This document shows positions 2,271 through 22,109 of a DNA stretch of 64,000 bases, in pieces (positions within the stretch are counted from its first letter, which is position 1; each line of letters opens with the position of its first letter). A program made the translations under genes and the position numbers. This DNA comes from Macrostomum lignano (taxonomy: Eukaryota). The notes below the pieces were generated by a model. The model saw only the letters and a program-made list of their open reading frames with translations. It searched no databases and was not told where the DNA came from. The stretch is from positions 62,001 to 126,000 of the forward strand of contig NIVC01001398.1 of NCBI GenBank assembly GCA_002269645.1. The letters run 5' to 3'.

Positions 2271-5200
2271 TCAGGGACCTTGCACCCTCTCCACCCTACA
2301 ACAGTCCGTGTTGGCAGTGGCTTGGCTGTCCGCCGCATCCCAGTGCATCTCACCGCAGTCGAAGCACTCAACAGTTGATTCCGAGTCCGGTGGGCCGTCG
2401 CCTTCCTTGGCAACCTGCGGGCCTGACGGCGGAGTACCGGCGTTCTCAGTGGATTCCTCCTTACCTTGATCGATCGGAGCCTCCAAAGCCTCCGCATCTT
2501 CCTTTGAGATGCTTGTGATGCTCTCCGCTCCCCTCTGCATCAGCAGCTGCACGCCGGAGACCAGGCCGGAGACGTACACCAGCCCGGTGAGCATCCACAC
2601 CGACAGCAGCAACTTGTAGGGAATCGAATGGAACATCTGGGCTGCACGGAAAGCGCATGGTGGCGTTGGCTAATGAGACGACGTAACTAACTAACTAACT
2701 AACTAACTAACTAACTAACTAACTAACTAACTAACTAACTAACTAACTAACTAACTAACTAACTAACTAACTAACTAACTAACTAACTAACTAACTAACT
2801 AACTAACTAACTAACTAACTAACTAACTAACTAACTAACTAACTAACTAACTAACTAACTAACTAACTAACTAACTAACTAACTAACTAACTAACTAACT
2901 AACTAACTAACTAACTAACTAACTAACTAACTAACTAACTAACTAACTAACTAACTAACTAACTAACTAACTAACTAACTAACTAACTAACTAACTAACT
3001 AACTAACTAACTAACTAACTAACTAACTAACTAACTAACTAACTAACTAACTAACTAACTAACTAACTAACTAACTAACTAACTAACTCACTAATTAACT
3101 AACTGCCCCCACGGACTCACCCGGTATGAAGTCACCAAAGCCGACAGTGGTCAGGGTGATGAAGCAGTAGTACACCCCAGTGCCGAATTCCCAGTCTTCC
3201 AGCTCGGCAAACACCAGAGACGGTATCACAAAGTACAGAAGCGTCCCCGTGGCAACGTACACGCAGCAGATGACGAACTTGGCCAGCTGGGTCCGATCCC
3301 GCCAGCAGCCGAGACCGATGCACCACCGGCTCAGCTGCTTGAGCTGATTGGCCATGGCTGTGAGCAGCATGGCGAGCAGCGGGATGCCGATCAAGGCGTA
3401 CAGGCAGCAGAACGCCCTGCCGAGGAAGGTGACCGGTGCCAGGTTGCCGTAGCCAACGGTGGTGAACACGGTCACGCTGAAGTACAGCGCGCTGTCGAAA
3501 TCCCAGTTCGACGTGGCTGACATCGTGGCGTTGGGAGACAGGCGGTTCATGTCCGAGACAAGCTCGGACAGGTTCATCAGGAGGCCGGACAGACTGTTGG
3601 AGTCCACGCATTGGAATTTGTCTGCATGATTGGCAAAAATAGGTCTGTCTGTCTGTCTGTCTGTCTGTCTGTCTGTCTGTCTGTCTGTCTGTCTGTCTGT
3701 CTGTCTGTCTGTCTGTCTGTCTGTGTGTCTGCCTGTCTGTCTGTCTGTCTGTCTGTCTGTCTGTCTGTCTGTCTGTCTGTCTGTCTGTCTGTGTGTCTGC
3801 CTGTCTGTCTGTCTGTCTGTCTGTCTGTCTGTCTGTCTGTCTGTCTGTCTGTCTGTCTGTCTGTCTGTCTGTCTGTCTGTCTGTCTGTCTGTCTGTCTGT
3901 CTGTCTGTCTGTCTGTCTGTCTGTCTGTCTGTCTTAGTGTCTGTCTGTCTGTCTGTCTGTCTTAGTGTCTGTCTTAGTGTCTGTCTGTCTGTCTGTCTGT
4001 CTGTCTGTCTTAGTGTCTGTCTGTCTGTCTGTCTGTCTTAGTGTCTGTCTTAGTGTCTGTCTGTCTGTCTGTCTGTCTGTCTGTCTGTCTGTCTGTCTGT
4101 CTGTCTGTCTGTCTGTCTGTCTGTCTGTCTGTCTGTCTGTCTGTTTATCCAGTTATCTCTTTATTGCTTTCTCACAGCAAATTCCATTCCAGCTCAATCC
4201 CATGTTTTGGTGGGCCAGCAGTTTTCATTTGATTAGCAGCCATCTCTTCCCTGTCAGCAAATTGAGTGAATCGTTAACCTGTGACTGCCTGAGGCGTACT
4301 GCCTGTTTGCTCAAGGCTACGCAGTCAGACATGTCCCGGATCAGTCAAATACAGTTGATGAAAGCATGGAGGCTCTAAGTGAATAATTGCATGAGTTGTA
4401 CAGAAAAAAACTGAGCTTATTCATAGACCGTGGCAACTGGAATTGCTGATGAAGCCCCTTAGAATGGCAATTGTCAAGCAACAATAAACAGTTATCGCCG
4501 ACAAGCCAGTTGGGCAGTGAATGTTGAGTTCAAATTCTGGTTGAATTTATTCTGTTGAGAGTGCAACACGGCAATTGAGGTTCTGCTGAAATTTTGGCTT
4601 CTGGATTCTCTTGAAGGAAATGTACTTTTAACTCCTGGCATGTCGAAGGATATGTTATTTTAAACAGCAGCTAAAGGTAAATGAACCGCACGCTACGGTT
4701 TGCCTAAATTTGTCGCAGTTTCCAGTGTGAGCTCAGGCTCAAGGAGTTCTTGATGAAGCAGTCTGGATCGGAGAATCCCTCAGAATTCTTTTTTATCTCC
4801 AGATGGTTTCTATTCCGATAAACAACATTTTTTTAACAAAGCTGATCAAATTTTTCTTTCTAGCTCCCATACTTTTATTAGAAAGCTATTAGCTGTCCGC
4901 CTGCACTCCCAATTAGGGCTTGCATGTGTTTAGAACCCACTGGCTCAGCCCCCAAGTTCCGCGCGGCAACCATGCCGGCTTAGAAGTGTTTGCATTGCCC
5001 CGCTACTCACCTGGCACTGTCGGAAGTTGTGCACTGCAAATTTAGTACAAACCAAGCCAAGCCGTTTGGGTAGTTGGAGAGTTTTGTTTAGCGTTGGCGG
5101 GACTCCCGCCAGCTTCTAAGGCACAAAGAGTGTACATGCCTGACGATTAGAAAGTCAAAGGGCCGCTGTACACCTGCGTGAGCGTCTGCATGAGTGCGCT

Positions 5201-5504
5201 TCTCTGTGCTCAGGAGAGTTACAGACTCAGCTTACCCAGGAACTGCACAATGAGGGCCTCGGCCGATCGCTGCCGCTCCAGAGCCGGGAGCCTCTCCAGC
5301 GCTGAGAAAACGGCGGCGCCAAGAAAGGAATAGGCCACCAAGGACACCAAATAGAGAATCGCCCGGCGTCCATGGCCTTGCCCGAACGATTTGCCTCGGC
5401 AGGAGCGCAGGGCAGCGCCCAGACCGTTGGAGCAGAGGGCCGCCTCCGGCTCCCTGCCGAGTGTGGGGACAGGGGTTCGAATTTTGGGATATTTATCAAC
5501 TACC
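2271..5504 (-). CDS. Two-pore-domain (K2P/KCNK-family) potassium channel, 5'-partial; exons 5504-5236, 3621-3121, 2641-2271
   Basis: Hand-spliced GT-AG junctions keep frame (G|GTAAG at 5236, cag|AC at 3621, G|GTGAGT at 3121, cag|CC at 2641). TM1 [20 protein letters not shown], cap cysteine (KFQCVD), P1 [21 protein letters not shown]2 [17 protein letters not shown]4 [21 protein letters not shown], stop TGA at 2271. No in-frame ATG found. Confidence 0.92.
2684..3104. repeat. (TAAC)n microsatellite filling most of a K2P intron
   Basis: About 100 near-perfect TAAC units between the exon boundaries at 2641 and 3121. Confidence 0.99.
3644..4143. repeat. (TCTG)n microsatellite in a K2P intron
   Basis: Direct reading; source of the spurious SVCL ORFs. 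Confidence 0.99.
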
Positions 5505-21162: not shown

Positions 21163-22109
21163 GGCTCTGGGGATCTGCTGGCTGAAGTATTTTGTAAGTT
21201 TTTCTATGTACAACTCTTATTTTCAAATACAAAGTTATGTACTTATTATTTCGAAAATGGTTATTGCACTTTATATCTCTAACCTTAAGCTTGCTTAAGC
21301 ATTGTAATTAAATGCTCTAATTTTAATCTTCTGCAATTTAAATAAGTTTTATACAGAAATCATATATCAACAGATAAATGAAAAGTCCTTTTAAAAGAGT
21401 TTATCAAAGAGTCGAACCTACTATGTATCTATGCTATAATGCATAAAAGGTGAAGGTTCCAACTTATAATATAAGTAACCATTTATGGGATGTATACTTT
21501 AAAGAATAGTCTAGTTATTAAGGAAAATTAATTGTTAACTAATCATTTTTAAAAGTAAATAAACAATTCAGTTATTGGTAAAAGTGTTGGCATTAAAACA
21601 AAAAAATCTTAACTTATTAAATTTCTTTGAGTTGACTAAAAGTTAATTAGAATATGCTAATCTATTATCAATAACACAGAATATACAGAAACTTAGCACT
21701 TTCATTTACAAAAACAAACTTTAAAATGCATTGTCTGCATTTTCATTCTTTTGGCTAGCACAGAGAGGTCATTGAAGTAATTTACAATTTATTAAGTAAC
21801 ACATACTAAGAAAAAATATAAATTTGTAATATAACTTATCAAACATATTTTTGTTCTTTCTTGTCTTTGGTCTCATTGACATTTCCATTATCATAAATCA
21901 TACATGCGCAACTGCTGGCCGACCTGGCCGATCCGGCCACCGTAAATCGTGGCTGACCAGGGGTAAGTCGCAAAATTGAGTCAACCAAAAACAGAAAAAC
22001 ACAAGAACCAAGAAAGGCAAGAGGAAAGCGAAAGAAAGAGCAGTTCAGGGAAAATGGTGAAGCAAAAGAAAAACAATTCGCAAAAGAAGCAAACTAAGTT
22101 GTAAAAATA

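Follow-up and report, generated by a model that had tools for sequence, protein, structure and literature searches.

A probable two-gene hnRNP F/H–MYND operon in Macrostomum lignano, with a neighboring K2P channel gene that is probably separate

We analyzed a 64-kb window of DNA from the flatworm Macrostomum lignano (contig NIVC01001398.1 of assembly GCA_002269645.1, Mlig_3_7; contig position = window coordinate + 62000), in which three neighboring genes, encoding an hnRNP F/H protein, a MYND-finger protein and a K2P channel, lie in the same orientation with no GenBank gene between them. An earlier note on this DNA, made from the sequence alone, had correctly placed all three genes on the minus strand and proposed that they form a single polycistronic unit in a presumed flatworm, with start codons donated by the AUG of a spliced leader (SL). 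We found instead that the hnRNP and MYND genes probably form a two-gene operon of the kind published for M. lignano, and that K2P is probably a separate gene, independent of this pair. In the model that we propose from the sequence, transcription would continue past the hnRNP poly(A) site and across a spacer lengthened by satellite, the MYND mRNA would be freed by SL trans-splicing at a cluster of acceptors (15865/15851/15830), and K2P would be transcribed from a promoter of its own. Taken with all of its parts, this model has in our judgment about an even chance of being right. The presumed flatworm origin itself is confirmed: GenBank locus L002 on the same contig is 100% identical to window 25857-4336, and the MYND product is 98–100% identical to M. 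lignano proteins in GenBank.

The published rules for trans-splicing in this species frame the interpretation. The M. lignano leader, CGGTCTCTTACTGCGAAGACTCAATTTATTGCATG, has ATG at its 3′ end (PMC8629364), as the earlier note had expected of a flatworm, and Macrostomum authors have described this ATG as a likely start codon (PMC10468722). Trans-splicing affects 30% of M. lignano genes and operons account for 15% of the gene set (Ustyantsev and Berezikov 2021, PMC8629364), the commonest class being two-gene units, which make up 75% of operons (PMC5730564; PMC8629364). Intra-operon distances are inflated by repeats and peak near 100 bp once these are subtracted; the operon threshold is 1 kb of intergenic distance after repeat subtraction (PMC8629364). 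Since the M. lignano annotation was produced by cutting transcripts at peaks of leader reads and calling open reading frames (ORFs) with TransDecoder (PMC5730564), it contains ORFs that are open to their 5′ end. The prefixes of GenBank gene names in this annotation denote sequence clusters, not transcription units. Operons in M. lignano and the use of a leader AUG as initiator are general phenomena already published, and the hnRNP–MYND pair would be an ordinary example of a known flatworm system. The identifiers of these loci had no match in the papers and supplements searched, and scans of the whole window found no leader sequence or SL RNA gene, no Rfam families and no tRNAs.

The candidate intercistronic spacer (15866..16707, minus strand) separates the hnRNP AATAAA and the MYND acceptor at 15865 by 842 nt. 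A 23-nt satellite (15918-16609) accounts for 692 nt of it, leaving 150 nt of unique sequence after subtraction of the satellite called by Tandem Repeats Finder (TRF), and the distance lies below the 1-kb repeat-subtracted M. lignano operon criterion (PMC8629364) both raw and net. The hnRNP AATAAA (16708..16713, minus strand) is the sole canonical poly(A) signal in the 2.3 kb between the hnRNP stop codon and MYND. Both it and the MYND AATAAA (14084-14079) are where the earlier note had seen them, and both are retained in a more diverged paralogous region, L001 (NIVC01002222.1). A single ATG occurs in the spacer, which lacks both a TATA box and GTRAG donors. Throughout the 2.3 kb upstream of MYND, we found neither a TATA box nor an ATG exon whose GTRAG donor has the right phase, the only GTRAG donors in this interval being inside satellite and in the wrong phase.

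This arrangement resembles the SL operons described in M. lignano (Wudarski et al. 2017, PMC5730564; PMC8629364) in that it comes from the same species, its genes are co-oriented, its net spacer is ~150 nt and its downstream gene, MYND, starts at a 3′ splice site. It departs from them in its acceptor, TGGCAG, which lies outside the enriched YTNCAG motif, although that motif is present at only ~44% of known sites. Caenorhabditis elegans operons are similar in having ~100 nt from the poly(A) signal to the downstream trans-splice site, when repeats are removed, whereas M. lignano has a single leader without SL2-type specialization and its spacers tolerate hundreds of nucleotides of satellite.

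The earlier note held that MYND has no in-frame ATG of its own before the finger, and closer inspection agrees: the frame is open from 15893, all four paralogs lack a start codon, and the first genome-encoded ATG in the MYND mRNA is codon 63, past the finger. The acceptor cluster (15830..15867, minus strand) offers three exon starts, at 15865 (ttttcctggcag|A), 15851 and 15830. The pyrimidine tract is best at the first of these (15/20 pyrimidines), which also has a CTGAC branch-point-like motif upstream. The other two, which the earlier note had proposed as phase-0 acceptors, both exist and are in frame with a leader AUG, which would yield M-QLRHRSQICLNC at 15851 (reading MQLRHRSQICLNC...) and M-ICLNC at 15830 (MICLNC...). 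Because an in-frame acceptor is a 1-in-3 event, such phase-0 coincidences carry little weight alone. Relative to the 15865 acceptor, the four annotated MYND coding sequence (CDS) starts lie at -4, -1, -1 and +9, a clustering of 5′ ends that suggests trans-splicing at or near 15865. In one paralog, L003, a C-to-A change, which comparison with L001 identifies as derived, has created an in-frame ATG (ATGGCAG|AC) that lies 7 nt before the MYND acceptor (L003:9990-10001, corresponding to window 15872-15866). The annotated L003 CDS starts after the AG and excludes this new ATG, implying that the mRNA does not reach it.

A leader joined at 15865 would provide no AUG able to start the finger, and only 15851 or 15830 would allow an AUG start. 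The leader AUG is plausibly the simplest route to an AUG-initiated MYND finger, one that would rely on the weaker downstream AGs at 15851 and 15830. There is precedent in Schistosoma mansoni, where, in the account of Cheng et al. (2006) relayed by PMC9851317, 28% of trans-spliced mRNAs have the leader AUG in frame, about the chance expectation, and more than 40 cDNAs need it. The SL-AUG-initiated ORFs of that study (Cheng et al. 2006, J Biol Chem 281:733, as conveyed by PMC9851317 and PMC12582326) are recognized by the absence of an upstream AUG, which we also observed in the window and L001 copies of MYND. Going by the same secondary accounts, MYND further resembles these ORFs in a leader that ends in AUG, a conserved N-terminal domain with no genomic AUG before it and the existence of in-frame acceptors, and it differs from them in that its strongest, annotation-supported acceptor puts the AUG out of frame.

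If MYND does depend on the leader AUG, the choice of acceptor would decide whether its trans-spliced mRNA is productive, and the gene would provide a clean, testable case in a flatworm capable of transgenesis. The 'partial' flag carried by all four MYND copies in GenBank may reflect a start codon that is absent from the genome. It is conceivable, though we think it doubtful, that the choice among the three MYND acceptors acts as a translational switch. Joining at 15865 would then produce a 15-codon upstream ORF (uORF) and leave the finger untranslatable from any AUG, while after joining at a site 14 or 35 nt farther downstream the finger would have the leader AUG as its sole possible initiator. 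The tandem acceptors of hnRNP, of which 21181 is out of frame and 21177 and 21174 are in frame, would work in the same way.

Upstream of K2P, a promoter-like block on the minus strand (6912..6955) combines CCAAT (6955-6951), three overlapping GGGCGG motifs (6945-6932) and a TATA box, TATATAAATA (6921-6912); nowhere else in the window, on either strand, is a TATA preceded by a GC box. A candidate conventional first coding exon (6788..6807, minus strand; ATGCCTCCGACAAATGCTTG|gtaagc) lies about 105 nt past the TATA box; it is 20 nt long, of phase 2 and in frame with the acceptor at 5504 of the exon for the first transmembrane segment (TM1), giving MPPTNAWVVDKYP...; this exon is identical in L001. 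K2P would run from its own CCAAT/GC-box/TATA promoter, with the ATG exon at 6807-6788 cis-spliced to 5504. Only three GTRAG donors occur in the 2.4 kb upstream of K2P, and 5504 is matched in phase by two candidate 5′ ends. The second is an alternative mini-exon (7153..7172, minus strand), with an acceptor, CCTGCAG|T, that fits YTNCAG and a donor, GTGAGA, at 7152. We favor the ATG exon as the probable 5′ end of K2P over a leader AUG at 7172. The earlier note had seen neither an ATG nor a first exon for K2P. It was right that the TM1 exon has no in-frame ATG, the frame being open for 69 codons upstream, but recognizable candidate first exons are present. Its suggestion of a leader AUG for K2P fails at 5504, where the reading is MGS-stop, and succeeds at 7172 only with the donor at 7152, not with that at 7156.

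Several observations weigh against the two-gene model. A leader AUG at the strongest MYND acceptor, 15865, is out of frame and opens the 15-codon uORF MTRPPSNCGTARRSA-stop, so that a leader joined there would not account for the start of the MYND protein, and the annotated MYND 5′ ends are scattered over about 15 nt rather than placed at one nucleotide. In L003 and L005, a TATATAG lies ~30 nt before the annotated hnRNP 5′ end, which may therefore be a transcription start rather than the product of trans-splicing. As for K2P, joining a leader AUG to 7172-7153 (20 nt) puts it in phase with 5504 just as the ATG exon is (MCILHQGVVVDKYP...), and the absence of the gene from GenBank may only reflect the removal of repeat-overlapping transcripts by the annotators. 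Finally, MYND could be trans-spliced from a promoter of its own, given that ~60% of trans-spliced M. lignano genes lie outside operons (PMC8629364).

The last of these points underlies the alternative that survives best, which we nonetheless consider unlikely: a trans-spliced but monocistronic MYND, with a short outron and a promoter in or beside the satellite spacer. The distance rule serves only to classify (PMC8629364), and the 23-nt satellite, being found ahead of the K2P region too, could carry regulatory sequence. However, neither a TATA box nor any other recognizable core promoter is present in the spacer, and its 150 unique nucleotides fit the operon mode. Less probable still is a conventional, non-trans-spliced MYND gene, with a transcription start a few nucleotides from 15865 and either a non-AUG start codon or, in one paralog, the new ATG. 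The scatter of annotated 5′ ends, which spans -6 to +9, speaks for it, as does the in-frame ATG of L003, where the window copy has CTG. Against it, these ends fall where a branch point, a pyrimidine tract and CAG are also found, the L003 ATG is derived and outside the annotated CDS of its own copy, and there is no TATA box.

The three-gene operon of the earlier note, with both downstream proteins begun by the leader AUG, we now regard as very unlikely. The genes are co-oriented, the TM1 exon of K2P has no in-frame ATG, and the mini-exon at 7172 combines a YTNCAG acceptor with the right phase. From MYND to 7172, the distance shrinks to ~1.9 kb when a copia element and satellite are subtracted, and to less if a transposon remnant is removed as well; from MYND to the acceptor at 5504 it is 8574 nt raw and ~3.0 kb without copia and satellites. 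Yet K2P lies 8.6 kb away behind the promoter-like block and the in-phase ATG exon, both situated between 7172 and 5504, and it is unannotated; moreover, any MYND-to-K2P polycistronic RNA would have to cross the 4.4-kb sense copia, whose short long terminal repeats (LTRs) carry ATTAAA at 12282 and 7990. Least credible of all is an in-frame cis-spliced fusion with the MYND exons as alternative 3′ exons of hnRNP: the hnRNP donors at 20490 and 18833 are both phase 1 and end in G, either one joined to 15865 reads ...VI-D-SAAQQLRHRSQICLNC with a terminal stop only, and many acceptors of parasitic flatworms are common to cis- and trans-splicing (PMC12582326), but phase compatibility is a 1-in-3 chance, the fourth quasi-RRM of hnRNP would be truncated, and GenBank keeps the genes separate at 3/3 paralogous loci (four MYND copies).

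The MYND-finger gene (14060..15865, minus strand) is annotated in GenBank as BOX15_Mlig015444g1 / Mlig015444.g1, with a 226-aa 'partial' product, PAA68407.1, that is identical to the product of the window. Exon 1 (15865-15483) is followed by an intron (15482-14642) filled by a 35/70-nt satellite and by exon 2, which begins at 14641; the stop codon is at 14338-14336, 252 nt before the AATAAA. For assignment to the family we required a profile match above the curated cut-off together with the C4-C2HC ligand pattern, and the protein shows both, matching the full zf-MYND profile in Pfam (PF01753, positions 1-39) with an E-value of 1e-6 and 29 bits against a cut-off of 22.7. Among 1.84 billion representative sequences we found no homologs beyond the finger, all 406 matches being confined to it, and the AlphaFold model of the protein has a mean pLDDT of 43. 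Comparison of the window and L001 copies gave six synonymous and four nonsynonymous changes over 164 and 523 sites, respectively (binomial p = 0.016), indicating that MYND is under purifying selection and that the finger is a genuine coding feature. The MYND cluster in GenBank has four members, and all four of these paralogous CDSs are 'partial.' In L001 the gene is tandemly duplicated (L001:3451-4653 and L001:10001-11200), and both copies share the same CDS and the same 120 nt of upstream flank, so the duplication is very recent.

The hnRNP F/H gene (16690..21181, minus strand; BOX15_Mlig000772g1 / Mlig000772.g1) likewise has a 'partial' GenBank product, PAA68408.1, whose 510 aa are reproduced exactly by coding exons at 21180-20490, 19642-18833 and 18211-18180 (minus strand). 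The gene has its genomic ATG at 21162, and the stop codon (18182-18180) is followed by a 3′ untranslated region (UTR) of ~1.5 kb that includes 23-nt satellite (16914-17689). In a homolog search, the best matches were to hnRNP H/F/glorund proteins (E 1e-60 to 1e-72; top identity 43%). Pfam RRM_11 matches were found on the GenBank product and four RRM-like blocks by tblastn, which exceeds the minimum of at least three quasi-RRM domains homologous to hnRNP F/H/GRSF1 that we took to define the family. The fourth quasi-RRM (window 18804-19664) follows a Gly-rich linker, and the last intron (18832-18212) interrupts it; members of the family usually have three such domains.

At the hnRNP 5′ end, tandem acceptors CTTCAG|CCAG|CAG|ATC (21174..21183, minus strand) give exon starts at 21181, 21177 and 21174. 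If joined at 21181, a leader AUG would read MPADPQSHAL-stop; at the other two sites it would be in frame. The earlier note's phase-0 acceptor at 21174 is in frame as claimed; the annotated CDS start at 21180, found both in the window copy and in L003, fits the out-of-frame CTTCAG|C acceptor at 21181 rather than 21174. In a further paralog, L005, the CDS starts at the equivalent of 21174 and the adjacent AG is mutated to CG. We had considered a uniform offset of GenBank CDS starts from acceptors, which fitted three genes and was broken by L005, and we therefore claim only that the starts cluster near acceptors. In view of the TATATAG of L003 and L005, the hnRNP 5′ end may come from trans-splicing or may mark the point where transcription begins. 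The window copy has a 45-nt deletion upstream of hnRNP that alters the TATATAG site (window 21205-21215; L003:4805-4851; L005:1425-1471). The extra 45-nt segment of L003 and L005 has GTAAGT at its start and a pyrimidine tract and TATATAG at its end, and is mini-intron-like. No GenBank gene is annotated within 10 kb upstream of hnRNP.

The body of the K2P gene (2271..5504, minus strand) comprises exons at 5504-5236 (TM1), 3621-3121 (first pore P1, TM2, TM3 and second pore P2) and 2641-2271 (TM4 and tail). Pfam identifies two Ion_trans_2 pore domains (E 3e-33), and the product has the two pores and four transmembrane segments of the family. It resembles KCNK6/TWIK-2-like channels, with 31% identity from TM1 to TM4, both pore loops (GYG, GFG) and the cap cysteine, and differs from them in a longer N-terminus before TM1, with the start codon seemingly on a separate mini-exon. 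The TM1 exon differs from that of L001 by three substitutions, all synonymous in the K2P frame; this pattern, together with a frame relation common to both copies, indicates that K2P is constrained and that the frame relation is real. No gene in the GenBank annotation covers K2P, although its TM1 exon differs only synonymously from that of its paralog. The practical value of the present analysis is mainly for annotation, in pointing out this missing gene and the possible reason for the 'partial' flag on MYND. The K2P introns are nearly filled by pure microsatellites, (TTAG)n at 2684-3104 and (GACA)n at 3643-4144 (gene strand), which may explain why the gene was filtered from the annotation.

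Two other K2P starts were considered and rejected. A start at the ATG at 5373, displaced from frame by a homopolymer assembly error, was ruled out by L001, which keeps the same frame relation. This ATG (5371-5373, gccATGg) lies 14 nt before TM1, out of frame, and is conserved in the paralog; its ORF would overlap the start of the channel. A candidate exon beginning with an ATG (7238-7153) was discarded on account of its frame, which differs between the paralogs: a poly-G run within it (window 7191-7201) is 11 nt long here and 9 nt in L001, reflecting either a homopolymer length error in this PacBio-based assembly or a real polymorphism.

The interval between MYND and K2P is largely repetitive. 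A transposase-type helix-turn-helix (HTH) ORF remnant (12578..13096, minus strand) matches HTH_28 above the Pfam cut-off and a Sleeping Beauty-type HTH below it, and is probably Tc1/mariner-like. The sense Ty1/copia LTR retrotransposon (7968..12330, minus strand; 4.4 kb) has interrupted gag, protease-integrase and reverse transcriptase ORFs. There are also three satellite arrays, one of which is a second 23-nt array (7277..7967, minus strand) of the same family as that upstream of MYND. The 23-nt unit (GGATTTGGGGCGATTCTCCAGGT, plus strand) has the same orientation upstream of the MYND exon (15918-16609) and of the K2P 5′ region (7277-7967). L001 has a copia copy in the corresponding place, and the two elements are 99.5% identical, while the hnRNP–MYND part of L001 aligns at only ~88–93% in satellite-rich high-scoring segment pairs (HSPs) and ~97% in unique flanks, so that the paralogous regions form a mosaic.

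Beyond hnRNP, the neighboring MAGI gene is divergently oriented across a 12.8-kb AT-rich stretch without an ORF of at least 150 aa, and GenBank has no gene in the 10 kb of this stretch nearest hnRNP. The earlier note's phase-0 acceptor for MAGI at 34041 is indeed in frame with a leader AUG. This 5′ acceptor (window 34030-34041, plus strand), ATTCTGCAG|GCC, matches YTNCAG, and a leader AUG joined there would read MAKVQTHVANGG...

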